DNA of 64,000 nucleotides from Chlorokybus atmophyticus. Lineage: Eukaryota; Plantae; Mesostigma and Chlorokybus algae. Positions 40,591-61,188 of this stretch are shown here, one piece after another (position 1 is the first letter of the stretch; every line of letters begins with the position of its first letter). The translations under genes were made by a program, and so were the position numbers. The notes beneath the pieces were generated by a model. The model was not told the origin of the DNA and searched no databases. It saw only the letters and a program-made list of their open reading frames with translations. The stretch spans positions 183,128-247,127 of the forward strand of contig RHPI01003491.1 of the NCBI GenBank assembly GCA_009103225.1, written 5' to 3'.

Positions 40591-40695
40591 NNNNNNNNNN
40601 NNNNNNNNNNNNNNNNNNNNNNNNNNNNNNNNNNNNNNNNNNNNNNNNNNNNNNNNNNNNNNNNNNNNNNNNNNNNNNNNNNNNNNNNNNNNNNN
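40591..40695. other. Assembly gap
   Basis: N run followed by poly-G. Confidence 0.99.
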
Positions 40696-40739
40696 GGGGG
40701 GGGGGGGGGGGGGGGCGCCTGCTGATAAACATTACCTTA

Positions 40740-41511
40740 CGAGCAAACAGAGGTGAAGACGCAATACAAATACCACAACTTGCAATACTTTATCTTAAAA
40801 TTTATTTATTCACATATATAATTTAAGATGCTTAATCGAACTTTGCGCAAACTTATTGTTACGCTATCAAAAGTTTCGTGACCGTTGCGATCAAGCATGT
40901 TGAAGCCTGGAATATTGCTTTATGTAACGGCTTTTGTCAAGTATTTACGAGTTATATACATTTTGCTTTATAAACATCATCAATGATGACTCATTGGATG
41001 GTCTAACGAAGCAATGTTTTGCATTGTGCTTGGCAAGTTGTAGTATAATGTACATAATTTGCTTTCGCACAACACAACACGTATATATATATATATATAT
41101 ATATATATTACATATATGTACATATATGTATATATGTACATATATGTATGATTAGCCATATACGAACATACACCTCATTGCATACTTTGTATACATGAGC
41201 AAAAGTCCCACAAATGTAACATATTACGTTATATAGTACGAGATGGGGCATACAAGCTATGTTGCTCCTTTTATGGCACCGATTTTTGCTGTCATACCCG
41301 AGGCCTAGTGGTTGGAGTGCCGTGTCCCAACATCTGTGTCCATATGGTTTAAACACATTTGTGCGGGTTCATCGGTGAGTGCGTGCGTGAGTGGATGTAT
41401 GGTTAAGTGATGTGCAATTGCAAACGTAATACTGATCGCCGCGCTTGGGGGTCAATATAAAGTGCTTCCGAAGTGCTGGCCAAAAACCGAATATATATAT
41501 ATATGTGTGTG

Positions 41512-41556
<45 letters not shown>

Positions 41557-44200
41557 TATGTCACATAATTTATTTGCATATCATACGTACCCATTACATA
41601 TTACGTATTGTTCTGTGAGAACTTCTCGTACGTCATATACCAAAATGACAGGAACTGTTCATGCCATGGCCCGTTGTGGCATTTAATTTTTTCCATGCGC
41701 TTGACGCCACAATGCAATGTGGTCGACGCTATCCAATAATTGTAAGGCAATTTACGTTCATAATAATTTATTATGTTTAATTTTAACCTGTTGTATTATC
41801 AAGTTTGACACGAACAGTTTGTAATATGGTATATTACACCATGTACATTTCGTCCAAAAACTAATAACGAAAAGCCTCGGAACCAAAGTTCAACCATACT
41901 TCCAATGCCATTTTTTCTGCAAAATCAATCCATTGGCTTATAACCCGAAACATGAAAAAATGAAGTGGAAAGTAACTCTCAGGCAAGTGCTTTGGGCGAA
42001 ATGTGTGTGTTTGCACAAAATAAAATACATATAGCAATAACTTGTACATGTATAACATTGATAACATCGTCAAATATTAACGATATGATGCATACGGTAT
42101 GGCAATATAATTTGTAAGTTAAGTTAACTGTATGCATTCAGTAATATAACAAAATATGGGGTACATGGCAGGTTTCACAGTTTCAAGTTTACAGTGTTAC
42201 GTGCATAATACATGTACCAAAGAGTTTGGACCGAAGCAACAACAAGTTATCACTAAAACAACACTTTACAATACTCGCAGTGTACGCGGCGCAACCTTAA
42301 GGGCTCTGTCGACTAGTGCTGTGCTCTTGGTGCATATAGCGAAAGCTGGCAAAACCCTGGCGAAAATTTTACAATGTTTTACATACACAAAAGTTGCAGC
42401 CAGCAGCTTGCACATTATTTGCGTTGCAATGCAGCCCTTGTAAAGCAATTATAAACTCACACTTTTTATGGACATACATTATAAGTCCAGATAAGGGTAA
42501 ATGACATATGTTTTCATTAAACGAATAATAGCATAGTATTTCATTTAATTATGCCATTTACCCCCCACATTTCACGCGTATAGAGTTTATTCGGCTGTTG
42601 ACCATGTTTGATGACGCAGTAACTATAGCGTGTAATCAATTAGCGTTACATGGTAAAGTGGATTAGTTAGAACGAGGGTGAGTAGTGGCGGCATGTCTTT
42701 GGGGCCTGCCCCGACCTCGTACCCCTAAAAACGCGGCCGTTTTGACCACTAACTGTGCTGCAATTGCATCAAATCGCTAGCAATTTTGGGTCACCGTTAG
42801 CTAGCAGTTGCCGCCGAGATGGTTTTCAGTATCTTTTATGCATCTCTGCAATGATTGGCCAATTTTCTGCATTTTTGAGCAACGGCTGTTGTCACCGTTG
42901 CGATCCCATTTGATCAAATTCATGTGTGACCAAATGGTGGCCTAACGATGCAATTTTTCGTTTAGTTGAAACTTAACGTTAAGGTAATTTAGGTTAGCAT
43001 TTTTTTAATGATTGTAACCTTAACATTACTCACTGAAATCCTTAGCATACCGTGGCATAAACGTTACGATTACTATTATGCTTTTTAACGCTTAATTGCA
43101 GGTTGCTAGCCATCTTGCAACAGATGTGCTTCATTTTGCAACACATCAGCAATATCACCATGTATCATTGTATCTCCATACTTATCAATACACATAAACA
43201 TGATCAATATGCAGCAGCAAGCGGCCACGTATGCAGTATTGTGCTTAATTTTAAAATTTCTTCTCTCTCTTCTCTGGCATGCGTTTAAACAATTGAATGT
43301 GCTTTGGACGGCCAGGATCGTTTAGGCAGATCGAACGGTGTAACGCCTGTACTCGCCGCCTAGCCAATGAGAAGCCGGGCCGCACATACTGCCGCGCAGC
43401 CCGGCAGTCGCGGGTGCCGTGTAATGGCCCGATCAACAGCCGCACCATTTCATCTCCGCACGTCACGTGGCAGAAACGTTAATACTTAATGTATTGTCTT
43501 GATACATGTGGGACATGTTCAGATCATATAAGCCATGTGAAACTATGAATGTATCATGTATAAACGATTGCATGTATCGAACATATCATGCATACATGCC
43601 TATATACATAATATGCTATGATTATAGTATTATACGCATATAATGTGTTTATTGCTATGCATTGCTATAATACATGTGCATATCTTGTCAATTATATATA
43701 GTGTAATATATTATATGTATAATATAAAAATACTCATATATAAGTGCGTATATATCATGTATAGTTTGCACTTATGATACATATACACATTTAGATTATT
43801 ATTCATTACAATGCATAATACTATATGTAGTCACAATTGCATATAGCTATTAAGATCATCATATAAAGTATATATCATTCGCATACATTGTGAGCAGTTG
43901 CAAGAAATGGGGACGAGCTCTGGACGGTCGAGACTTGTTTTGATAGATCGGCCGATAGCTAATTATTGCCGCCTAGGCAATGAGAGGCAGGCGGGCCGCG
44001 CAGCCCGGCAGTCGCGGGTGCCGTTTGTCACACGGCCGTCGTGCGTGGTGCGCGTGTGATGTGTCTTGCCCTAATGCCGGCCGGCCCAATCACACGCCCA
44101 ATCAGCCGCACCGCTAGTTGGTATGTGAGTATATTTAAATATATCATATTGTATTACGTCGGTATGTCTGCATGTATGAAAGGCCGCGCACATGAACATG
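40740..44200. other. AT-rich, ORF-poor block with (TA)n/(TG)n tracts; probable non-autonomous TE relic
   Basis: Visibly more AT-rich than the flanks; TA-type tracts at ~41083-41150 and 41490-41556; no recognisable protein; termini not found. Confidence 0.5.
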
Positions 44201-44547
44201 TTTAATGTGCTTACATGCGTGAGATTACCGCTAGAAGCTGCACTTTATAACGCGGTTTTGGCGGGAAAGGCGGGGTTTCGCCAACCACCAGCATCGGGGG
44301 CCTCTGGTGCAACATGGCGAAACCGCAATGCTGCACCGCGTACACTGAGTACACCTCACAACCCACAGCCCGTTGGTATAAGCGTACAGTCTACCCCCGC
44401 TAAGAGCATACTGTTTATCCTCAGCCATCTTATGCTCTTGGCGGGGTTATTCTCTAAGCGTTGAAGAGCATAATATGCTATTGACTGCCAAGAGCATAAA
44501 TATGCTACTAGCGGGGTTTTGTGTATAATACCTTTTATGCTCACTGC

Positions 44548-45600
44548 CAGTTTCATTTCGCAGTTGTTTGCGCCGCGTGATGCACGTGATGCGTAGTATG
44601 CCGCCGTGTATAGTAGAACGCGTGGCACGTGATTTGAATTTCGCGCTATGATTGTCGTGTATGTACTGATCGCCGCGGCGTAGCACGCGGCGAAGCACCC
44701 TATCTTAACGCCCGCGAACTTAAGCATAGATGCACAGCTTGAGTGTATAATCGGACGCCCCCCAAAAAATCAACGGAGTTAGCGGAGCGCACGTGGCATC
44801 GTTCAATATATGTTTACCGTTGGATGTTATTTAGGTATTAAACACGCGTGACTTGGTGTCTGATACCGTTACTCGTCACGATTTGTGGTACGTGATTTTT
44901 ATTCTATGACCGCTCGTGTATGTATTGATTGCCGCCGTCAAGCACCCTATCTTAACGCCCGCAAACTTCAGCATATATGCACAGGTTGGGTGTATTGTCG
45001 GACGCCCCCCAAAATATCTACGTCGTCAGCGGAGAGCACGTGGCGTCGTTTTGTATATGTGGGCCGTTGGATGTTATTTAGTCATTAAACACGCGTGACT
45101 TGGTGTCGGATACCGTCACGCGTCACGATTAGGGGAGTGGTGCAGTCGATTTCGCAGCCGATTTCTGCAGCCTAATCGCCTCGACGTTTTGGACACGCAT
45201 ATCGTCTCAGCATGCGGCGTGTTGTCGTTTCCGAAACGTTGGACGCAACGCAATTATGAAGAGCGCGTGACTTTGTGTCGGATACCGTTACGCGTCACGA
45301 TTGGGCGAGGTGTGCAATCGATTTCGCAGCCGATTTCTGCAGCCTAATCGCTTCGACGTTTCGGATACGCATATCGTCTCAGCATGCCTTGTGCGGCGTG
45401 TCATCGTTTCTGAAACGTTGGACGCAACGCAGTTATGAAGCGCGCGTGACTTTGTGTTGGATACCGTTACGCGTCACGATTGGGCGAGTTGTACAGTCGA
45501 TTTCACAGCCGATGTCGCAGCCTAATCTGCTTCGACGTTTTGAAAATGTATATGGCCTCAGCATGCCTTGTGCGGCGTGTTGTTGTTTTCGAAACGTGCA
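44548..45600. repeat. Nested tandem repeats (2 units of ~245 bp, then ~3 units of ~175 bp), with palindromic hairpins at unit junctions
   Basis: CGCGTGAC-TT(G/T)GTGT(C/T)(G/T)GATACC-GT(C/T)AC(G/T)CGTCACG starts at 44845, 45092, 45264 and 45443. Confidence 0.9.
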
Positions 45601-45693
45601 TCTGGCGGCGGACGTTAGTGTGGTGGTGGCGTGGTGTCGCTTAGTTGCACTGCTATATTTGCGGTGGTTGTGAGTAGGCCTGTTCTTGTAATA

Positions 45694-47961
45694 ATGTCAA
45701 GTGTTGATGGAAGCGCAAGTGCTGTGGGGGATGTCGGGGTTCCTGTTGAGCGTTGGTGGACACGCGATGAAGTGAACCATTACCTCAAGGTAAATTACAT
45801 TGTGTGGGTATTCAATGCATAGTGATAATGCATGACAATTGGTCATTATGACATGTTCGATAGGTGGACGGTACGTTGTTCCCCTTTATGCCACCTGCTG
45901 ACGTTTTGCAAGCTGCCAACGCTGTGAATGCGGAAAGCGCTTATGGTGATCACCCTGCGGCGAAACATTCAGTTTCATTTCGCAGTTTTCCGCGCCGCGT
46001 GATGCACGTGATGCGTAGTACGCCGCCGTGTACAGTAAAACGCGTGGCACGTGATTTGTATTTCGCGCTATGATTGTCGTGTATGTACTGATCGCTGCGG
46101 CGTAGCACGCGGCGAAGCACCCTATACTAACGCCCGCGAACTTAAGCATAGATGCACAGCTTGAGTGTATAATCGGACGCCCCCCAAAAAATCAATGGAG
46201 TTAGCGGAGCGCACGTGGCATCGTTCAATATATGTTTATCGTTGGATGTTATTTAGGTATTAAACACGCGTGACTTGGTGTCTGATACCGTTACTCGTCA
46301 CAATTTGTGGTACGTGGAATTTTATTCTATGACCGCTCGTGTATGTATTGATTGCCGCCGTCAAGCACCCTATCTTAACGCCCGCGAACTTCAGCATAGA
46401 TGCACAGGTTGGGTGTATTGTCGGACGCCCCCCAAACTATCAACGTCGTTAGCGGAGAGCACATGGCGTCATTTAGTATATGTGGGCCGTTGGATGTTAT
46501 TTAGTCATTAAACACGCGTGAATTGGTGGCGGTCGCGTTGCCCGGCAGCCATGGAGCCATTAATCGGGCAATGGGACAGTTTCACCGACGACGACACAGC
46601 ATCACCATGTCAGCTGATTGAGCATTGTGGGCATCGTCACGATGAATGTTCAATTTATATATTTTGTCTGATCGCAGCACAAGCGCCGGAGATGTTTTTA
46701 ATTGCCATTTCGGTGTTTTTTCGCGAAAGCGATCAGCGTCTATTTGTGCGTTTAGAGGATGCTGCTTGTGTGGTGGGCATGAAGAAGAAACCTTGACTCA
46801 GTGCACTTTTTGACATGGACGCAGAAGGTGTGGATGTCACCGAAGACATACACGATGAGACTAGCATGTGGGACGTGGCTGAAGGTATGCAGTTTGTGTA
46901 CGGTAGACATTGTTGCAGCATGCTGAAGCAGGCATAATTGCTGTCAGTAATGTTTTGCATGTAGGTCGCCAACGCGCTGGTCTTTCAGTGTCAGTGTATA
47001 CCTCAAATGTCGCTATGTCCTTGGCGCCGACAGCACCACCTTGCGCCCCTCCTGACCCTGGCTCCGACACAGAAGAAAATTTTTTTCATGACGAAAGCAA
47101 TCAGTCCGACCAAGAAGACGAAGCTGCTCCCCAGCGAGCCGAAGTCCCGGGCGATGACGACTTGCACGCCCCCCTTCAGCAAGGATCTGAAGATGTAATG
47201 TTGATCGTTAATTCCAGTTATTCGAGGCTCAACAAGTGGCGTTGGTGGGTAGTTTGGGTCTGGAGTATGGCTGCACAAGACTGCCGCGTCAGTCGGTTGC
47301 AACAGGAGACCGAGGTATTCATTAATCGTGGTCACTTCTTGTATTGCCATGGCAACACCGGCAACTACGGCACTACTATGCGGTTGCCAGACATTCAGGC
47401 CATCATGCAAGCGAGCTTCGCTACAGCCCAAGCACATGCAGCTGCCCTGGCCGCCCCTACAAACCTCACATTGGAGGCACCGCCGGTCACGCTAACGTTG
47501 CCCGCTACATCCAGAGCACATGCAGCTGCCCTGGCCCTGCCCGCGCCTACAGACGTCACATTGGAGGCACGGTCGGTTTCGCTGGCGTTGCCCACTCCTC
47601 GACCACATATCACTCCTGCTGAAAGCAGCCGCAAAAGACCTAGGTTGCCCTCGCCTTCACTCAAATGTATTTGTAATGGAACGTGTGTGTGCGTTACTGC
47701 TTTTGGCAGTCATTGCCGGTTTGTTTTAGACTACACAATGTACACATCACAGTGGTAACTGGGCCAAGCGCATGCAAGACAGAGGAAGGTGGACCGAGCT
47801 CACGGCCTATGAAGCGCGATGACACCGCTGAAGATCTCATCAACGCGCAGGTGGCTTCCTTTGTGTTAGACTACACTAAAACTTTCAGCGAAGAAGAGTT
47901 TATTAACATTGTGCGGCGTGTGTATCGCAAAGGTTATTGGAATGTAGTGATGACTGATTAG
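45694..47961 (+). pseudogene. Intron-containing cargo gene of unknown function, interrupted by the repeat copy
   Basis: MSSVDG..RDEVNHYLK|VDGTLFPF.. joined by a GT-AG intron; later exons FRESDQRLFVRLEDAACVVGMKKKP*, an acidic stretch and an ~84-bp duplication (AHAAALA..TLEA). In-frame stop; model uncertain. Confidence 0.45.
45970..46520 (+). repeat. Second copy (~550 bp) of 44548-45100
   Basis: Both begin CAGTTTCATTTCGCAGTT.. and run co-linearly with scattered substitutions to ..TTAGTCATTAAACACGCGTGA. Confidence 0.92.
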
Positions 47962-48457
47962 GGGTCTAGTAACGTTTCGAAATGTACTAGTGGCCTTATA
48001 TTACGCGCACAAGCAGGCTGCTCTTCCGAAACGTCCGTGTTAACTGTAAACGACGAAATTCAGCAGTCTTAGCCATCAATGTATTCACCGTTTGCCGTTG
48101 ACCCCATGTACGACTGTACTCCCATATGATGGTACTGTGCCTTGAACGGCAACAAACTCAACCAGGATGCATTTACCGTTTGCCGTGTACGTGATGTACG
48201 ACTATATTCCAGTACAATGGCCCCGTCCCGTTAATGGCTGACGGTATCGCTAATGCCTTGCCGATTGTTGTTTACCGTATAGGGAACACGTGATGCGTCA
48301 TAAATCGAGTCTGGACGTGACGCGCGTATAGGTAGCCGCGTGGCGGCCCCACAGTCGTAGATTAATAAAAACTATCGCACTACATCTAACGACGGTACAG
48401 AACAGCAATATATACCAGTAGACATCGCTGTCAGCCGTTGATTTGATTGCCTAACCC

Positions 48458-51400
48458 TTGTGCGCCTGGCGCGGATTGGGCGCGGCGGTGGCGCAGACGA
48501 TTCGGAAGCTGTATGGCACCTGGGAGAGGAACTTGAAGGCCCTGTATCGTCCGAAACGACGGTGTTTCTTGCACGTCAGAACTATGAGTACGTTATTGTT
48601 GCAGTGTATGGCAACTGTATCACATACGTTGTTTTCCATGCAACTAGAGTCGTGGACGGCCGTTTGTAACCAAACTTTCGTGTTGATGTTGTGTTGCTGT
48701 TGTTGCGGGCGTGTGCAAATCAGCAATGATGGCACGCACACCAAGGTGCGACCGTTTGCCAACCTTGCACACCCTCCGTATTCATTAGTCAATCTGTATA
48801 TGGATAGATATATACGGCAAAACACGAAGTGGGCCATATGTTTTTTGTGTCGACGTATACATGATTGCAAAACAGAGTTTTTAAGCGCACTTACGCCCCG
48901 ACATATCAAACGCCTGTTAATTTCAAAGCCCTTGCACATCATGATGTTATCTTTACTAAACACGAGATTAAGTCTGCAAAAACAATACCACAATTATGGT
49001 ACCACGCATGGTGGCATTGACGTTGAATCCGTCTTTACTGGTCCGTTAATACAATGGTCAGATAATAGTTTGCTATTAGATGGGCATGCCACAGTTTTGC
49101 AAGATATCTTATGCGAAATGCTAGCGCAGAATGTGTATGTTAAACACTATCGCACAATGATGGAACAGCCACGACGTAATCTCGGAGTGGTTGTGTAGAC
49201 TGTAGATGTGATCGCAAGCTTAGTAAGTCATCATATTGCGCGTAACCCCAATGCTGTTGATCTTGAAACCGAAGTGCATCGTGCAATATCTACATGCGTA
49301 CCCGTTGAAGCGGGTAGCATGCCAAAATCGCGCAATACGCTGATATACAATGGAAAGCCTTTTGCTGGAAATTTGATGCAACGCAATTCGCAAGAAGAAG
49401 TTGAGCTCTTCGTTTCTCCCATGACCACACGCAGCGCTAACATGTCCGTAGAAATGGCGTTATTCCCGTTCTTATATCCATCTGGCAGGCATGACTTCAG
49501 CGGTACGTGCAACATTGGAACATATTTGTCATATCGTCTCTCTTGTTTATTTTTGGTGTACACATTGTACAAGCCATACTTGTTATTGATGTATCAAGTT
49601 TGGCAAGCATGCCGCGTTATGAGTACGCACTATACAGTATGTATTGAGAAAGAGTTTAACAAATACAAAAAAAAACATCCCTTCAGTACAGATGACATGG
49701 CGTACCAAAATATTATCAAATATCATATACCCAGTACAGTGCCACAGTCGCCATTATGGCACAAGAATCAATTGATCGATGTGTTGACGTTAGTCGATCA
49801 TTGGGGTCTACCTTCATTATTCCTGACTTTGACGGCTGACGAGGTGTCGTCGCCACGCTGCGCAGAGTTGATCATCTCGAAAATGTTGTGCAATCGATCA
49901 ATTTGAACATGACATGGCGTGATTGTCCCGTAGAAGGAGCGATACTATTTCGGGAAAGATGCACAAAGTTTTTAAAGCAATTCATATTGGGCAAAGGTAT
50001 TTTGGGCGAAGTGCAGCATCACGTGTTGCGTTATGAGGTACAGCACCGCTGATCTGTACATGCACATATTATGCTGTGGGTCGCTCCACAAGATGTCGAC
50101 CGCGTAAGCAACGAGATTACAGCAGTGGTTCCTGCAGATGTAGACTCAGCAACAAACAGATTCATACGTCCGCAAGATCTGATACAACAAAAGTTGTTTG
50201 ACCATATCATAACAAAACATATGCATACATGTCGCGAAGATGGTTGTCCGAAACAAGGGCCATGCCAATATGGATTTCCATTTGCTGTACACAACGACAC
50301 TTGTAAGTACGATGCGCATTAACGTCGCTATTTATATTATCGTCCCCGCCATTGCGATCGCAATGTAGTACCATGCCACCCCGCGATCGCGTTATTATGG
50401 GGCGCGCACGTCAATTTACAACGCATATGCAATGAGGCATGGTCATATTATGTGTTAAAATACGCAATTAAGTCCGAACCATTTGGTAAACTTAATCTCA
50501 ATCCTGATGCTGCACGGTGTTTGGGTTTAAAAGGAATGACCGACGCCGAACTGCGCGTTACGTCAGCGCTGTACATGTCGAAACCTGTGAGCCCTGCGGA
50601 AGCAGCTTTGGTATTGCTCAATATACCAATAGTGCATATGTCATCATCTGTTGAATACTTGGATTAAAGACCCAGACAATTCCGCGTGATAAACATAGGT
50701 CGTGGCGCCAATCTACATAACGTTGACAAGTATTGCGCACGGCCAGCCTCACTTAAAAACGTTACGTTTTATGATTAGTTTCGAGAATACGTTTGTGTCG
50801 ACAGCAAAACGCATGCTACGATTCAATCTGACCATTCTACAAACAAGTACATTGACTTCATGGGTGTCACCATACACACCACCACGAAATATGTGTATCG
50901 CTTATGCCAGCCCAAAATAATCAGATTTACCGATTCAATAAGTTATCATCCAACACATCACATGCAAGCGTATTTTTACAATGTGCTATTGCAAAAGGTG
51001 CCATTTCGAACAGAGAATCAAATACAACCATCTGAAGACGCTGATTGTTTACAAGAATGCATTACTCGAGGAATAGTGGATGTCGACAACATTGATGAGC
51101 ACTTGCATCAGTATACACAAAGGCATCTGCAAAAAGAGGTCGATGGCGAATTGTTGTCGAACATCATGCAACAAAGAATGCACAACATGCATATGACACC
51201 TATACCATCTTCGATTGACGTAATCACAAATGCCGATGATACAAACATGTTTAAACGTGACTTCAATATGAACACTGCCGACAACTTAATGGGCTCACAA
51301 CGGTCAATATTCAACGACATAATCAATAGTGGTGAAGGATTGTATGTTCTTAGCGGCACTCCAGGTAGTGGCAAAACACGTATGATTAAGACACTCGCAT

Positions 51401-52677
51401 CACATTATGCACGCCACGGAAAACATGTGCTCCTGACCGCTAGCACCGGAGCTGCAGCCAAAAGAATACATCCTGCAGCCACCACAATTCATAGCGCCTT
51501 TAAATTGCCTTTTCGCGATGATGGCTTTATGAGCACATTGTACCCGACCGATGCAGCGTACTTGGGCATTGCAACTATGGACGTGCTGATTATTGACGAA
51601 TTTTCAATGCTCACAAGCAGTACGTTTAAGAGTCTGATTATGCATCGCATGCAAACCGTGCATGCATTGATGACTATACTGGAAGTGGTCACAGTGATTC
51701 TAGTCGGTGACATGCACCAGCTGCCAGCCGTATGCCATCATCGAGTTACACCATGCCTACAATGTCAAATCACGACCAGTCACTGGTGGACTGATGCAAA
51801 AGTTATGCATCCGACAAGTTCTATCCGACAAGAACAGGATCCGCACTTCGCGCAATTTCTTTCGTAAATCCGGCACGCTATTCCTTCGAGCGAACAAATA
51901 AGAGAAGTCTTAGCATCGTGCGTCTGTGATTTCCAAACCGTCTTACGAACTCCAGGAGAAATCACGGTCATTTGTTCCCATGTTGTCGACACAATGGTAT
52001 ACAACCATCTCATATTGCAGAAATTATTCCCTGATGCGGTCATTACAAAAGTTAACATCAAACACAACTGCCCTACCAACACAATAGACACAAGAATTCT
52101 GCAGTTTTTGGAAGAACCTAACTTTCACCGCATGCAATCGGTGTGCATTGGTGCACGTGTACTGTTCATGAAATCAGATACCCGTCGGGGCATCACGAAC
52201 GGCTCCACCGGTACTGCCACCGCCATTGAACTAGATCCAGATTCGTTGCTAGCTGACATGAAGGCAATCCACGTGCAATTGCATGACATTGATCGCATAG
52301 TCCGGGTCACCCGCAGCGACCGAAAATACTGCTATGACACAAGGCAAACGTACTTCAAATGTACATTCCCTATGCAACTGGCCTATGCTGTCACCGCCCA
52401 CAAATGTCAAGGAATGACCATTGCACATACCGCATTCGTCGACATTCAACACGCTTTCTGCTCTGGCATGTGGTATGTAGCGCTGTCAAGGGTGACGCAC
52501 AGATCCTACCTCAAGTTGAAAGAATTGCCCGCACCGCAAATTTTTAAAACCGACATAGACGTTTCAGAGCAACGAACGAGTCTAACACGTTGCAAGATGC
52601 ACGTGGCCTGCTGCAAAACGTCCATACATGTAAATATGCCAATATGCATATACGCAGAAAGATCGAAAAACGTATGA
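48458..52677 (+). pseudogene. Helitron-type Rep/helicase (HUH endonuclease + PIF1-family helicase), broken by stops and frameshifts
   Basis: Rep motifs LPSLFLTLTADE, YEVQHR*SVHAHIMLW (HUH), YYVLKYAIKSEP, KPVSPAEAALVLL. Helicase motifs LSGTPGSGKT, LIIDEFSML, LVGDMHQLPAV, SIRQEQDPHFAQFL, FPMQLAYAVTAHKCQGMT, YVALSRV. Confidence 0.92.
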
Positions 52678-52980
52678 ATAACGCTAACTACATGACCTAA
52701 TGTTATGCGTAACGCCATGAATGGATAAGGCCATCGACCTATCACACCGTTGTAATAGGCCGCGGATTGGCGCAGCGGCGCGGACAATCGCATAAAGCAA
52801 TCGACCACTCCAGTCGCAGCAATTGTGGTAGGCCGCGGCTTTGGCGGCGGCGGCGGCGGCAGCGAAACCACCACCATTTCAGAATAGACAGGCCAGGCAG
52901 CGGCGCCGGCGAGAAGCAGTAAGTGTTTTGAAACGTCGCGTGCCATTTGTGGCAGAGCATTAACTTCCTGTGCGACACAG

Positions 52981-54173
52981 ATGGCTGACCTCTTCAGCGC
53001 TGCGTTCGAGGCTGCGGTCAAGCAGCTCGACGACCCTGATCCAGCAACGGACACTCCGTTGAGGGACGAGCCGCTACCTTTTACTGTCAACCAGCGGCGG
53101 TTGCTGAACAGTCTTGGGTACTTACCGGAGGAATACTATGATCGCTACGACATTTCCTACACCGACATCGACCACATGATCACAAAAGCAAGACAGAACG
53201 AAAAGGATTGGAAGCGCAAAAATCAGCAGGAAGTCGGCGCACCTACAGGTAATAAACCACACGTTCATACCAAGTGTGTAATAACTGCAAAGTTGCAAAT
53301 TGCTACTGTTCTTGGTAACACCCCAGTGATGATCTAACAAGGTTGTGCATTAGGGTCCGCCAAATACTTCTTCGCCAAGTTTGGCAAGCAATTCGGCCAC
53401 AACATGAATAGGTACGACGCGTTCAAGGCGCTCAGCGAGATCATGAACCGGGAACTCGAACGCGACGGAAAGACAAGGGTCATCTAGACAGTGCAGCTGT
53501 TGGAAATTATCTTTGAGTACAAAGCGGCAACGTGGGAAAAGTGCAAGCATTTGACTCAAGAAGAGGCAGCCAAGATCATTGACGCACTGGAGAAAGTCGC
53601 TGAAAAGGAAGGATCAACGCTGACACCACAACGTCAGAGACAAAAGAGGACTTATCTCCAGGATTGCTGCGACATTGCTTCGCCATCCACCGTCCCAACG
53701 CAATCAAGCATGTCCACGGTAACACCAACTACCGCAGAGCCCGCCACACAAAAAAACAAAAAAACACCAAATCCAGCGTTGGAGCCAGCAGTACCACCTT
53801 TACAAACTGACGCTTACACGAACAGGTACAATACGCATGTGCAACTTGAACATACCCTGCTACAACACAAACAATAATCACGAATTGTCAGGTGGTGTGT
53901 ACGTGGGGCAATCCGTTCATCCCCACCAACGGTTCACCCAACACGCACGTAAACCGCCCAAAATGAAAGATGTGTTGAAAGATGCCCCGTTTAAAGAACA
54001 AGTCACCATGGAGGTGATGGGTTCCTACGACTTGCAAGCAGAAAATGACGCGGCGGAAACCACGCTGACACTGAAGCTGCGTCGTCAAGGAGTGCAACTT
54101 GAATACCTTGGTAGGAGCACCATTGAAGACTCGCCAAGGGTGGATGTTCAAGCAAAACGACATCATGAAGTAA
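52981..54173 (+). pseudogene. Spliced cargo gene ending in a GIY-YIG endonuclease domain
   Basis: Exons MADLFSAAFE..GAPT|GSAKYFFAKFG..RVI*TVQLL..LTQEEAAKIIDALEK. Then, in a shifted frame, QYHLYKLTLTRT|GGVYVGQSVHPHQRFTQH..AAE..NLNTLVGAP*. One in-frame stop and two apparent frameshifts. Confidence 0.72.
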
Positions 54174-54467
54174 ATGTCGCCTCCTCATTAGACAACGCAT
54201 TGCATTTGCTGTATTAGTGGCAACTAGGTTCCCCAGCATCAACCCGGATAGGTGTATGATTCATGCATGTTTTACAAATAAAAGCGCATTTGTTAAAAGC
54301 GCCTGCCCAACACAAAGCCAAAAATATAGTAACAATATGTGCGACATATAACATTTAAAAGCCAAAAACGTTTCCAGTAATCACAACTGCCGCACAACTA
54401 CACGACTACAACTAATAACAATTAAAATCAACAGTAATCTCTGAAGTAATCTAAAGTAACCGCGCTA

Positions 54468-55629
54468 CTAAGGCGGAGGACTACTCTCCTCCAACTGCTC
54501 CTCGTGCTCCGGCTCCGAAGGGTCTACCTCCGCATCCGGCGGATCCACCTCCTCCAGGATCTCCTCTATCTCTTCCTGCCGCCGCTGCACTCCTCGTCGC
54601 CTATGACGCCATGCTGCTTCATCGTCCTCCAATGAAGGCGGAGACTTAGAAGTCGCTACTTCTTCGGGGGGCTCTTGGCCGCGGTCAAGCGCCCGCTGCC
54701 GGCGACGTGCTTTCGCAACACGCTGACGCTCTTTGCGGATGCGGCGCTTGTCCTTGAGCTTCGCCTTCATGATGCGACGGCGGTTGACGATAGTGTTGGT
54801 GTACCGCGGGTCATGGGCTTGCCGCTCGTGAAAGTCGACGGTGCCGGGGTTTCGGGCATCCCCGCGGAAGACCTTGCTCAGGTCACTGTCCTTCTTCATG
54901 GGCTTGCCGCTCGTGAAAGTCGACGGTGCCGGGGTTCAGGGCATCCCCGCGGAAGACCTTGCTCAGGTCACTGTCCTTCTTCATGATTGTGACCCGACGA
55001 CCATGAAGGGCAAGCAGGTTCCTGCATCATAACGGATTATCATTGACAAAACATGTCAAACATCAATCATCAAAAGCCTGCCACCATGAACAAGCACACA
55101 ACGCAACTTACATGTCCTGCATGTATTCGGTGACAAACATCTCCCCAGCTTCCTGAAGTGCACTCAGAGCTTTAGCCCTCCAGCGAAAGGTGGGTGTGTG
55201 AAACACGTCAGCTGCAACACCGCTTCAGTATATATGCAATATAAGCAATTCAATTACAAATTGCATACCGTATTTCTCGTCAGCGAGAAGAGCGTTAACA
55301 CATCCGCGCACAACTTTGCAAAAAGACAACTTGGGGATGATCGGAGCGGTGCTCTTCTGCATCCACCAAATTTCGCGCAGGGGTTGCGTAACGCGTGGCT
55401 TGCATGAACACCCAGATTACCAACAAGTATATATCAAGACATATGCTAGGACAACTCCTTACTTGCGGCGAGGACGTGCGGGGGGCGCAGCCGGCAAGGC
55501 TTGCTCATGTGCAACAATTGCACCTTCGCCAGCAGGTGCAGCGGCGCCAACAACAAACCGCCCACCAGGACCCCGAGGACGCGGGTAAGCACCATCGACG
55601 CGACGACTGCACTGCTTTGTGCGGGCCAT
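54468..55629 (-). pseudogene. Divergent histone H3 / CENH3-like gene with long C-terminal extension, 4 exons (55629-55463, 55399-55269, 55211-55112, 55021-54468)
   Basis: Hand splice: MARTKQCSRRVDGAYPRPRG..PARPRRK|PRVTQPLREIWWMQKSTAPIIPKLSFCKVVRGCVNALLADEKY|ADVFHTPTFRWRAKALSALQEAGEMFVTEYMQDM|NLLALHGRRVTIMKKDSDLSKVFRGD.. It aligns to H3 throughout (LREI..QKST, ALQEA.E, H..RVTIM.KD). The intron-1 acceptor reads CAA instead of CAG, and an 85-bp duplication shifts the frame. Confidence 0.88.
54811..54985. repeat. 85-bp tandem duplication in the last exon of the H3-like gene
   Basis: TCATGGGCTTGCCGCTCGTGAAAGTCGACGG..GGTCACTGTCCTTCT occurs at 54811 and 54896 with 2 mismatches. Confidence 0.95.
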
Positions 55630-56240
55630 CGCCAACACCTACCCCAAACCTACCCCAAACTACACTCAAGCACGATAATACACAACACCAGCGAGGCAAC
55701 AACAACCAAGGAGCACAAAGACGTTTCAGAAATACGAATGCGCCACACGACCCAAAACAGACACATATGAGCCGCCGAAACGTCGAGGCACTTTCGCCTA
55801 CGCAATCAGCTGCCAATTGGCCTACGAAACAGCCTGTGGAGCCGTCACCACCCTAACCCTAAAAGTGTCATTTATCAACAAGAATATGCCGATAACCGTA
55901 CCAACTAAACGCGATCGATGCTAATGTGCATGACCGCGGTTAACAAACACATGTACAGGCGGGCAGTGAGCATCACCGCTGGTTCGCTTTAGCATGGTGA
56001 GCAATGAAGCTCAACAATGCTCATGTTGCTACATTCTTGCTTGAATACCATACAATTGCGTTGCTATAGTCAGATGAATCCCAACAACATTCTTGCCATT
56101 TGTGTGACATGCAGCCAAGATGCTGCGGTTGTAATGCATTGTTTAATGTACATCTGCTAAGCCTGTCAATGGGCTTGAAATGTGTTTCAGTGTGTTGACG
56201 TTTGTGTATGATGCAAAGCATGCACACTTGCATGCATGTC

Positions 56241-58460
56241 TCATGCCTTGAACATAATGAAAGTTCGCATGTACATCAAACATCTCAGCCACTGGTCATC
56301 AACTACAAGAGGGTCTTCGGCCGTTGCACTGGTGGTGGCTGCGTGTGATGTTGATGCCTCATTGCTCGAGGCATGAAAGAACTCGTGCAAGCGTGTCTGG
56401 TGCGAGGAGCCAAATAGCTGATGACGAATCACCACATTGCGGATGTGCCGCAGCGCCAACTGTAGATGCTCAGGCATAAAGAACTCACTGCCAGCCACGA
56501 AGGCCTCAATACTGTCCAAGTGCTGAGGACACCCGAATGTCGTCACAACCGGCGGTGCGCACTCATCATCATCTGCAATGTGTTATGTGAAAATCATGAG
56601 AAGGAAAGCTACATACGGTGTGCATGCACGCGTACACACCTTCCGCGTCGGGATCGGCGGTGTCGTCCGTCGGTGGAGTCAGTGCCCCAACACTCATAAA
56701 AATGTCCTCGTCACATTGGCTAGCCTCAGTAGGAAGATGATCATCCGCCTCAACGAACTCGTTAGCGGAGAGCATGTCAGCACGTGGAATGGGCAAACGC
56801 TGCATCATCTCACCCATGTCGTGTATCACCGCGTGAATGATGCGCTCGGTGTCGGCGGGAGTGGCCTCATACCATTCCGCGGGGGTAATGCCAGTCTTCC
56901 TCCAGCAGTTGGCAATGGTTGTGGCAGTCAGCTCGTCCCACGCCTCGTGATTCCACATGATGGCTTCACGCATCTGCACCTTCACTTTACTCAAGTCGAG
57001 GGTGGGGTCTGCACCATATTGCTGGAGAAGATGCTGCACAAGCTTCCTTTTGTACCCGCACATGAAGACCATCAACAACATGATATACACCACAATAAAC
57101 TCTGACAAACAAGGGGGGTTTGGGGGGCCGGGGAACCAAAAAATTCTGATATCTTGATAGAAATAAAGGCTCTGTTTGTTCATAACACGGCATGTATTGT
57201 GACTTACCTGGCCTTGTATGCAGCGATGATGCCAGCATCCAAAGGTTGGACTCTGGATGTAGTGTTGGCCGGAAGAAACAGACACTTTATGTGATTAGTG
57301 ACAGCGTTCGGAAGCCTTCTTCCAAGCCCTGTTCCGCATACACGCAGGCATGCGTTGAGGAGTTGTCCATCAGCAGCAAGATGTGGCGGTTCTGTAGCTT
57401 CATATCTAGATTGAAGGCACACAACCACCGGCTGAAGACCTGTTGCAAGCATCACAACAGTAAGTGACATGCACAATCAATGCATGTGCAGCTGCAAATG
57501 AAGTTGCATATGCACATGCACTCACCCCGGAGTTCATCCAAGCCTTCTTGTTGTAGTCGTAGTCAACGCCAATGCGGATTGGCGTCCAAGTGCTGCCAAA
57601 GGACTTCGGACGCTTGTAGGTGCCAATGATGAGGACTGGTCGCTTTTTAGAACCGTCAGCGTTGACACACAAAACTGCCGTGATTCTGTCCTTCTCTCGC
57701 TTGCCCCCTCTAGCTTCCTCCGATGCAACTACTAATGTACGACGCGGACGTGCTCTATAGAACACTCCGCTCTCATCCATGTTCCATACATCAATGATGC
57801 GATAGTTTGCTAAGATCAAAGGCAATCTACTACGAGCTGCATCCACACCCTCCGCATCTGCATCAGCTGCTTCGCTATGCAGAGTTTTCGCAGCAATTGA
57901 ATGACGCTTTTTGAAACGGTGCACCCAACCTTGCGAAGCGTTGAACCCTTCTATTCCTAACCGGTTGGCAAAATCTGATGCTTTCTCCATCAACAATGCA
58001 TCAGTGATCAACGCATTGCGTGCTCTGGCCTGTGCAAACCACTCATACAATCCATCTTCTAACTTGGGATGAGCCCCAATCCGCATCCTTTTGTTTTTGG
58101 CCGCATGCTTGCCACCCACAGCCAACGCATCGGCTATTTGCTGTCGCTGTTTATTGAGAAGTTTGGAGAGCGAACTCTGCTTGATAGTGAACTTCAACTC
58201 AGATTTAATAATAGCAATCAAGTCCGCTTGCTTAAGACCTTCATTGGCGTCACACAACTCAAGTTATCACGCTTGATTTGTGCGGCCATGCTGACCTACA
58301 ACAACAATCACACACTACATTACTGTTTGTGCATACACAATCACACACTGCATGTACGTGCATGCACTGCATGTGCGTTGCAAACCCTTACTTGTTGTGC
58401 GCCGCCAGCAGCGGCGCTGCAACAGCCGTGACCAGCTAGCCGCCCTACAAGTTGAGCGGC
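56241..58460 (-). pseudogene. pogo/Tigger transposase (CENP-B-type HTHs + DDE_1), intron-containing, frameshifted
   Basis: HPKLEDGLYEWF, FNASQGWVHRFKKRH, WNMDESG, KDRITAVLCVNADG, KKAWMNSG|VFSRWL..LLMDNSSTH, (shift ~57295) FLPANTTSRVQPLDAGII, TIANCWRKTG, C-terminal QTRLHEFF. Start exon uncertain. Confidence 0.92.
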
Positions 58461-58995
58461 ATGCCCATCAACTATACACCGCCCGCCACCGCTGCCCCAG
58501 CCTGCGTCTCCTCACCGCCGTCGCTGCCGTCCGAAGTGGCGGCGATGATGCTTTGCAACGCTAAGTTACATTAAGATACAGTGAATCACATGCATCACGC
58601 CCATCATGCTCATCACGCTGCGTGCCGTATGCATCACACTTGCACCCCCCGATACAAGCATATCCTCACTTAAACTTACGATTTTTTCAAGGAAAAAAGA
58701 TATGCTCTTCGCGGTTAGTCATATTCTCTTGAGACGCGTAATTTGCCTGTAGAACGTTTGGTAATCTCATTTTTTATGATACTAACGGGGTTATTCTCTT
58801 GAAATGAATTCTCTTGGCGGGGGTAGACTGTACAACGTTCATCACACCACACTTGGGAACACTGTACACTTTCTCGTGTTCTGATCGAAACACGTCCGTG
58901 TGAGAAGTGAAGGCCCCTACACCAGCAGGAGAGCGAGCAACAGCGGTGCCGGCGGCCGCAGCGTGGCTCCGCAAGTTGTCGTCAGCGTCCCTTCT

Positions 58996-61188
58996 ATGGC
59001 TTACTCCATAAACAGCAAGCGGTAAGCAACAATGGCAGTGGCAGCAAGCAGCTGCACGCTTCCGCAAGCTGCATGTGTTTTCAGAGAACAGGCATGATGG
59101 TGGTCTTGTTGTTGTCGTGTGTTAGCTTTGAGGGCAAGGTGTTCCTGGTGACTGGCGCCAGCAGCGGCATTGGCGCCGTCACCGCGGAGCACCTCGCCGC
59201 CCAGGGCGCCCACGTTTGGGTCACTGCTCGCCGCAAGGACCTCCTGGAGGAGCTTGAGCGGAAAATTGTGGGCGAAAGCGGCAAAGGTAGGGTTTCGAGT
59301 GTATGCACCATGCAAGTACGTGGGTTTGCTGTGTTCACTCTTGCGTGAAGCGCATGTGTGCTGAGCCTGGTTAGCAGCATATCTTGGGTACACAAAAGAG
59401 ACAATTATGGCGGTTTCGGCTTTCTGTCGTGCATTACGTCCATAGCAGCAGTTCAATTGGAAGCTGGAAGTCTGCCAGCACGCTTATCACCAGAGAACAC
59501 CAACGTGAGAGTTGTTCGTCCGTTAGCTTCAGCATTGCTTTAGCGTTATACTGCCACAACAATCACTGTTGTGGCAGTATAAGACCAATGCACTCTGCCA
59601 CCACAACAGTGCCTGCTGTGGCGGCTGTTGTGGCAGTGAGTGGTAGCAGGTTGAGACATCAATCGAAGCAGCTTACACAATGTGTCACGCATTTACCATG
59701 TGAGTGTGAGTTATGTCCACCAACATGAACGCAGGTTCTATCACGGAGAGAATACGATGTGTACATAAAAGTGTTTGTTATGTCAACCAACATGAACGTG
59801 GGTCTATTATGGAGAGAAAACAATGTGTACATAACAGCTTGCTTGCCAGTCGCTTCTGTGACCCCTTTTCGCATGCACCTTTAGCTTGTTAAATCAAACA
59901 GTCTTGCAGCGTCATGTTGTCGTTGTCCAGTGTTGCAACCATTGTTTCCAAACTCTCTTTTTCTCACAACACCAACAGTGGCTTTCTCCCCATGCGACAG
60001 CAACTGCCGCTGTGTTGGACGTGACAGACACAGCGCAAGTTGAGCAGGTCAAAAGGGGTGTGCATGGTTGTGTCACGTGGTGTGGTGCATAGCAGCTCCA
60101 TCGCTGACTGTTGGTGTGTGTGCTGTTGGAGTTAGGTAGTAGCGGACATCGTGGCAGCGCATGGAAAGCTTGACGGGGCCTTCAATAATGCAGGTGTGCA
60201 GTCTCGCCTTGCTGCTCATACAAATACAGAGTTTGACACAACTCTCTGTCATGTCAAAATTGTCTCTGTCAAGAATTGCGCTGGCATCAAGTAGATACTG
60301 TGCATTTTTTGCATGCCCACCCATACGCGCACATACGCACACACGCCCAACTTGCATGGGTGGTTTAACTGGCAAGCACACGCAATGTTGCTGTGGTTGC
60401 AGGCTACAACCCACCAGCAAGCCTCGTTGTCAACAACAGCATGGACGATTTGGACAAGACGCTGGCCATCAATGTTAGAGGCCAAGCAGCCTGTATGAAG
60501 GTAAACTTGTCTGCTGTTTTCCCAGCGCATGCTCTCTCACAGTGATGCAGGTGATGCCAGTGTTGTATTATGCGAGCCGTTGCTGATTTGCTGTGTCGTT
60601 GGGTTCTCTCAGGCGTTGTGCATTTACTCGGTCTTGTTTATTTGACTCTGTATCACCATTCTGTATGTTTACTCAACCGCAGGCAGAGCTGCGACAGATG
60701 CTCGCGCAAGGTCATGGCTCAGTTGTGAACAACACAAGCATCGCTGGCCACAAGTACACGCCGCTCAGCAGCAGCTATTGCGCCAGCAAGGCTGCGCTTA
60801 ACAGCTTCACTATCTCTGCAGCAGTGGAGGTAAACATCAAGTTAACCAGCAATGAATATACAGACACATGCGTGTGTGTGCGCGTGCGTGCGTCAGCATT
60901 GGGAGCAACCATGCTCATGTTGTTGTGCAGGTTGCGCAGAGTGGGGTGCGCGTGAACGCGATTGCTCCCGGTTTTACTCTCCCGTCAGAAATGTTCTCGG
61001 CAATGGTGAACGGCCCTTCCTATTCGCTGGACTCTATTCTCAATCTCATTCCAAGCAAGAAAGTTGTTGACAGCGAAGAAGTTGCTGCTATGGTGGCAGT
61101 TCTACTTGATGACAGGCTGTCAAAGTCTGTGACAGGGCAAGTCATCAGCATTGATGGGGGTGCTGGTATCAACCACTACAATTTGTAG
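58996..61188 (+). CDS. Classical short-chain dehydrogenase/reductase, ~7 exons
   Basis: MAYSINSKR|FEGKVFLVTGASSGIG, LDVTD, GKLDGAFNNAG, NTSIAG, SYCASKAA, VRVNAIAPG, VTGQVISIDGG. Confidence 0.93.

Follow-up and report, generated by a model that had tools for sequence, protein, structure and literature searches.

A divergent histone H3-like gene inside a composite DNA transposon unit of Chlorokybus atmophyticus

Some mobile genetic entities, namely giant viruses and bracoviruses, are known to carry histones, and the centromere protein CENP-B derives from the pogo-type transposase family. Marseilleviridae, medusavirus and clandestinovirus, together with the bracoviruses and their H4, are mobile entities with divergent histones of their own. 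Among cellular histones, the centromeric variants of H3 (CenH3) are recognised by the loss of Q68, F84 and T107 and by a longer loop 1 (PMC7598501). In trees, CenH3s and divergent H3 variants are not cleanly separated into clades (PMC2939574), and viral H3-like histones, that of Clandestinovirus among them, likewise have a longer loop 1 (PMC9145170). Canonical H3.1 genes of plants are intronless, H3.3 and CENH3 genes contain introns, and the CENH3 proteins of cereals measure 159–172 aa (PMC8603533). Helitrons acquire host DNA on the 3' side, and full-length capture by them is reported to be exceptionally rare (PMC6431247).

Here we describe an H3-like gene of C. atmophyticus. It lies in a 64,000-nucleotide stretch of DNA, called the window below. 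Searches of the literature found no Helitron, pogo-type or other transposon histone, no histone capture and no paper on a Chlorokybus CENH3.

Structure and H3 identity of the gene

The region flagged by the initial annotation as a CENH3-like histone fold comprises two exons and one intron of a minus-strand H3-like gene, whose predicted layout is as follows.

54468..55629, minus strand: H3-like gene, consisting of a MARTKQ tail exon, three histone-fold exons and a K/R/E-rich C-terminal extension
55462..55629, minus strand: N-terminal tail ORF of 56 codons, starting MARTKQ, its remainder unlike H3 and including RPRGPGGRF
54943..55398, minus strand: histone-fold domain, with alpha-N and alpha-1 in exon 2, the long loop 1 and alpha-2 in exon 3, and L2 and alpha-3 at the start of exon 4
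55398-55269, minus strand: exon 2, translation PRVTQPLREIWWMQKSTAPIIPKLSFCKVVRGCVNALLADEKY
55268-55212, minus strand: intron 2, 57 nt, GT..AG, phase 1
55211-55112, minus strand: exon 3, translation (A)DVFHTPTFRWRAKALSALQEAGEMFVTEYMQD
55111-55022, minus strand: intron 3, 90 nt, GTAAGT donor and CAG acceptor, phase 2
from 55021, minus strand: exon 4, translation beginning NLLALHGRRVTIMKKD...

Under this predicted GT-AG model the reading frame of the fold is free of interruptions. Intron 2 falls within loop 1 and is straddled by the string VRGCVNALLADEKYADVFHTPTFRW, and intron 3 interrupts the ATG codon that encodes the M of QDM. Host introns elsewhere in the window have the form GTAAGC...TAG and measure ~80 and ~440 nt. 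Translation of the tail ORF yields the N-terminal ARTKQ of the histone H3 family, a string established as the start of H3 and too short for a tool-based test. Where the tail exon joins the first fold exon, the simplest reading is out of frame; a proven break at this point was dropped, since 4 of 79 canonical GT..AG pairs stay in frame. The last exon contains one short frame-changing tandem duplication, with a length that is not a multiple of three, outside the fold. As read, the frame closes ~19 codons past the fold, giving a predicted product of ~178 residues, and a 143-codon K/R/E-rich continuation sits in a different frame after the duplication.

H3 numbering was derived from exon-wise phmmer alignments to PDB chains. 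Residues 4–41 of exon 2 align with residues 45–82 of H3.2, which places C at position 68, and residues 7–31 of exon 3 align with residues 81–105 of H3.3, which places W at position 84. When the exon 3 alignment is continued, the split-codon M falls at position 107, and residue 1 of exon 4 pairs with H3 residue 108. The exons accordingly match H3 45–82, 81–106 and 108–133, colinear from alpha-N to alpha-3. Taken singly, the exons give weak histone matches (Pfam Histone E = 0.022 and 0.085; PDB E = 0.035, 0.008 and 1.8e-5), and the Pfam Histone family (PF00125) scores 15.5 and 13.6 bits for single exons, with a gathering score of 26.4. What places the match to H3 far beyond chance is its order: one after another, three adjoining exons of the same strand correspond to successive H3 segments, downstream of the MARTKQ ORF. 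Identity to the best chain of each exon is 17/38, 13/26 and 16/26, or ~51% overall. Structural residues are retained (ALQEA, LALH, RRVT and the D of KKD), and WW stands in place of the RR of H3 in alpha-N. The gene is a real, strongly divergent variant of histone H3, with splicing as predicted by the GT-AG model.

Two further observations concern the tail exon and the region upstream of it. Tail residues 17–25, RPRGPGGRF, are identical to the C-terminal DNA-anchor motif of NF-YA/HapB, a protein that binds a histone-fold dimer; the matches are weak (PDB E 0.33; Pfam CBFB_NFYA 0.18) and may be due to chance in a G/P/R-rich stretch. At 55851-55864, ~225 nt upstream of the MARTKQ start codon, two telomere-type units (CCCTAACCCTAAAA) occur, which may represent a telo-box-like promoter element or a chance match.

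CENH3-like features

The substitutions named in the initial annotation, Q68 to C, F84 to W and T107 to M, were borne out by the exon-wise alignments to solved H3 structures, with the corresponding strings on the minus strand, so that Q68, F84 and T107 are all absent in alignment coordinates. W84 is shared with human CENP-A. The annotated TIMKKD is present in exon 4 and is an exact match to yeast Cse4. The ~11 additional loop 1 residues likewise hold under the predicted GT-AG intron 2: from C68 to W84 there are 27 residues versus 16 in H3, which makes loop 1 longer by 11 residues with the predicted donor. This donor is supported by the H3 alignment, which stops no more than two residues short of the last residue of exon 2. 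Reading these losses and the longer loop 1 as diagnostics of CENH3 agrees with the published criteria (PMC7598501). The accompanying caution that other fast-evolving H3s can display them is consistent with the lack of clean clades (PMC2939574) and with the longer loop 1 of viral H3-like histones (PMC9145170).

Similarity scores differ among the exons. For exon 3, human CENP-A scores 19.1 bits versus 16.0 bits for H3.3, 22 of the 25 matches are CENP-A, Cse4 or Cnp1, and the start of helix alpha-2 carries a W-x-A-x-A-L-x-ALQEA pattern in common with human CENP-A. For exon 4, Cse4 scores 23.5 bits versus 20.9 bits for H3, and a Cse4-Scm3-H4 fusion chain reaches 27.4. The 60 matches listed for exon 2 are all H3 (13.5–17.8 bits), with no CENP-A or Cse4 among them. 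As the margins of CENP-A and Cse4 over canonical H3 in exons 3 and 4 are only ~3 bits, and exon 2 favours canonical H3, the summed similarity expresses no net preference for CENH3 or H3.

The gene thus resembles CENH3, CENP-A and Cse4 in the three lost residues, in the alpha-2 start (CENP-A), in TIMKKD (Cse4) and in the longer loop 1, as well as in a tail that diverges past its first residues and in the presence of introns. It differs from them in the extent of the loop 1 insertion, in the WW of alpha-N, in its long C-terminal continuation and in a first fold exon closer to canonical H3. It differs also in location, since the gene lies inside a transposon and not at a stable host locus outside mobile DNA: matched inverted repeats with TA flanks enclose it, and two transposase genes stand beside it. 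The host CENH3 would be a plausible source of the gene.

The composite unit and its genomic setting

The H3-like gene is located within a 14.4-kb unit, the parts of which are listed below in the order of the window.

44386-58831: composite unit, 14.4 kb, bounded by pogo-type inverted repeats
44386..44409, plus strand: left terminal inverted repeat, CAGTCTACCCCCGC..., preceded by TA
44548..46600, no strand assigned: repeat block adjoining the left inverted repeat, a ~1.4 kb unit present twice, with sub-repeats of ~247 bp
48458..52677, plus strand: Helitron-type Rep/helicase (Helitron_like_N and PIF1-like helicase), in at least 7 ORF pieces and three frames
52981..54217, plus strand: three small ORFs that separate the helicase from the H3-like gene, with a weak GIY-YIG match in the last one (53837-54217)
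56569..58257, minus strand: pogo/Tc5-type transposase (HTH_Tnp_Tc5 and DDE_1), with DDE_1 spread over three ORFs
58808..58831, minus strand: right terminal inverted repeat, followed by TA

The 22-nt end sequence (TA-CAGTCTACCCCCGC...) occurs exactly twice, in inverted orientation, at 44385 and 58832, with 0 occurrences expected by chance. TA is found at both outer sides of the unit, and sub-terminal motifs are common to the two ends. The unit has the terminal inverted repeats, the TA target duplication and the DDE_1 transposase with a Tc5 HTH that characterise pogo and Tc1-mariner elements. A second left end near 56 kb was sought and none was found, which ruled out a second pogo copy as the source of one of the repeats. 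The Helitron-type segment combines a Rep (HUH/Y) and a PIF1-type helicase on one strand, with Helitron_like_N in two ORFs (E = 9e-5 and 3e-5) and PIF1 and AAA_30 at E = 1e-20 to 1e-21. The splits in the Rep/helicase and in the pogo transposase represent either introns or frame breaks. The best homologues of the helicase ORF are only 35% identical and offer no route to sister elements.

A scan of 52.6-56.7 kb for a Helitron 3' end, marked by a hairpin and a following CTRR-T, recovered nothing usable, and the Helitron accordingly has no defined ends in this interval. Since these ends were not found, the H3-like gene could have been carried by the pogo-type unit or by some other insertion. The description of the gene as the element's histone, given in the initial annotation, stands as far as its position inside mobile DNA is concerned, between matched inverted repeats with TA flanks; its carrier may be either the pogo-type element or the Helitron.

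Several additional features of the unit were recorded. In the repeat block at 44548-46600 the ~1.4 kb copies are 96% identical over 300 nt, and the ~247 bp internal repeats are rich in CACGTG. Upstream of the Rep domain, a 282-codon ORF (46910-47758, plus strand) has no family match; it contains two 82-bp repeat copies 90 bp apart (47425-47596), which encode A/P/T/L-rich units. The GIY-YIG match of the ORF at 53837-54217 (Pfam E = 0.0064) is below the cut-off, and comparison of this ORF with solved structures gave no match.

Outside the unit, the window contains genes for STT3, a methyltransferase, enolase, a SASA esterase and a short-chain dehydrogenase. The esterase, enolase and methyltransferase genes lie on one side of the unit and the dehydrogenase gene on the other, and the host methyltransferase ORF is 100% identical to jgi/Chlat1 Chrsp41S05697. 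Within 58832-61188, the short-chain dehydrogenase gene starts ~250 bp past the right inverted repeat, so the unit occupies its upstream region. To the left of the unit, the sequence at 40600-44200 is AT-rich (GC 0.29-0.43) and contains runs of (TA)n and (TG)n. Several N gaps fall within (GA)n or G-runs (7.3-7.8, 16.4-16.7 and 61.6-61.9 kb), as signs of a short-read scaffold. Rfam and tRNA scans of the window returned nothing.

The examined copy is set among housekeeping genes, in surroundings that are not centromere-like. Flanked by ordinary genes, this single copy shows no centromere association, and the proposal of the initial annotation that the histone steers the element to centromeres or seeds neocentromeres is unsupported. 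It is very improbable that a transposon lineage would keep a CENH3-type histone of its own to enter, mimic or seed centromeric chromatin. The transposase of the unit shares HTH_Tnp_Tc5 and DDE_1 with CENP-B and its pogo relatives; this likeness of domains is generic to pogo elements and does not tie the transposase to the histone.

Origin of the gene and competing explanations

A search with exon 2 against 1.84 billion representative proteins, clustered at 50% identity from a parent collection that includes the Chlat1 proteins, returned only two tandem-repeat proteins, which were judged spurious. As no relative of exon 2 appeared in a collection containing Chlat1, no annotated Chlorokybus protein closely resembles this exon, and the gene is unannotated in a form that includes it. 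A very recent capture from an annotated parent is weakened by this result, to the extent that clustering at 50% identity allows. The exon 2 open frame had no match among metagenome contigs, and searches with the C-terminal extension ORF (143 aa) in proteins, in IMG/VR and in JGI metagenome contigs gave no homologue. Of ten ORFs of the window, none has an exact counterpart in the protein collection, and tblastn of the exons against the window recovered no paralogue.

The codon composition of the gene resembles that of the host and not that of the Rep/helicase: GC3 is 0.62 in the fold exons and 0.69 in the extension ORF, compared with 0.54-0.72 in host exons and 0.48 in the Rep/helicase. In a drift simulation limited to substitutions, ~10% of runs kept the three fold pieces open at 51% identity, and indels would lower this fraction further. 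Given this low frequency, a fold that has fallen to ~51% identity with its frame and two GT-AG introns intact indicates that most of the divergence arose under constraint. This constraint may have acted before capture, in a host variant such as CENH3, or later, within the element. Simple decay would account for neither the degree of divergence nor the integrity of the fold, which probably evolved as a working H3 variant.

The reading that we favour, with roughly even odds of being correct, is that the H3-variant gene is a Helitron-captured host gene, carried as cargo in a composite DNA transposon with pogo-type repeats outside and a Helitron Rep/helicase inside. We infer that read-through capture downstream of the helicase brought a host H3-variant gene with introns into a Helitron, and the prime candidate for the parent would be the host CENH3. 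The predicted protein would have an ordinary histone fold through which it joins H4, and it would become part of nucleosomes, to which it may bring altered DNA-end contacts (RR to WW in alpha-N), a longer loop 1, a CENP-A-like alpha-2 start and a non-H3 tail. This reading is supported by the known uptake of DNA at the 3' side of Helitrons, by the host-like codon composition, by introns such as H3.3 and CENH3 genes of plants have, and by the placing of the gene in mobile DNA, with the Rep/helicase upstream of it and the pogo transposase next to the right end. It is weakened by the lack of a parent in the searches, an extension ORF with no homologue, the missing Helitron ends, the reported rarity of whole-gene capture and the single copy examined. 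As with Helitron-captured host genes of maize, Pleurotus and others, which are known on either strand, the H3-like gene lies downstream of a helicase and keeps its introns and a host-like composition. Known captures are nearly always fragments, whereas here the whole fold and a start codon are present; moreover, the literature searched describes no histone among them, and the Helitron ends are undefined at this locus.

The intact fold is also open to other explanations. In one, the transposon family has long had the histone as a working gene, which selection preserves because it helps the element; the histone might then label the chromatin of the element itself, weaken silencing, or imitate CENH3 and so gain access to centromeric chromatin. 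In favour of this are an intact fold beside two split transposase genes, a divergence beyond what neutral decay would allow, the lack of a close host parent in the collection with the Chlat1 proteins, and the likeness of the alpha-2 start and TIMKKD to CENP-A and Cse4. Against this stand the host-like codon composition, unlike that of the Rep/helicase, the failure to find a second copy or relative, and the position of the examined copy among housekeeping genes. At ~1.4 interruptions per kb in the Rep/helicase, moreover, an intact fold of ~100 codons is unsurprising by chance, and the extension was lost through one frame-changing duplication; we consider long-term maintenance by the element unlikely. 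Another account, in which a canonical H3 or H3.3 copy decays and acquires the CENH3 hallmarks by drift, would draw on the same duplication and on the decayed element around the gene, and at ~50% identity a change at all three given positions is not rare. It is nevertheless improbable, given how seldom the substitution-only simulation left the fold open, a proportion that indels would reduce, and given the GT-AG retained at both fold introns, the conserved structural residues (ALQEA, LALH, RRVT and the D of KKD) and the two base changes that F to W takes.

Two further accounts place the source of the gene elsewhere. It could be the host's own H3 variant, possibly a true CENH3, at a native locus amid transposon remnants, as its host-like GC3, its GT-AG introns of host-like size and a ~178-residue product of typical CENH3 size (159–172 aa in cereals; PMC8603533) might indicate. 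The matched inverted repeats with TA flanks around the gene, with no second left end near 56 kb, speak against a native locus, as do the absence of exon 2 from the proteins of the collection with Chlat1, the recent frame-changing duplication and the one ambiguous exon junction, and we assign this account a correspondingly small likelihood. Acquisition from a foreign source, such as a giant virus or another eukaryote, would agree with the lack of a relative in the host-containing protein set, with the longer loop 1 of the Clandestinovirus H3-like histone (PMC9145170) and with the divergence of viral H3-like histones, which are ~43% identical to host H3. Three predicted spliceosomal introns, a host-like GC3, an extension ORF without a match in IMG/VR contigs and the absence of viral genes nearby make an outside source very doubtful. 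The likeness to viral histones consists in a mobile entity with a divergent histone of its own, extended in the case of clandestinovirus by the longer loop 1; in contrast to them, the Chlorokybus gene has spliceosomal introns and host-like codon use, and it encodes a singlet H3 and has no partner histone in its vicinity, in an element that is a transposon.

What the gene means depends on which of these histories applies. A single decaying copy would be a mere curiosity. If capture by the composite transposon is real, the locus would represent a rare full-length gene capture of a chromatin protein, and if selection keeps the histone, a transposon would here be manipulating the identity of nucleosomes. 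Should a transposon lineage in this early-diverging streptophyte alga keep a CENH3-type histone, it would be the first transposon-encoded centromeric-type histone. A further outcome of the analysis is an unannotated H3 variant in a lineage, Chlorokybus, that is key to the evolution of plant chromatin.
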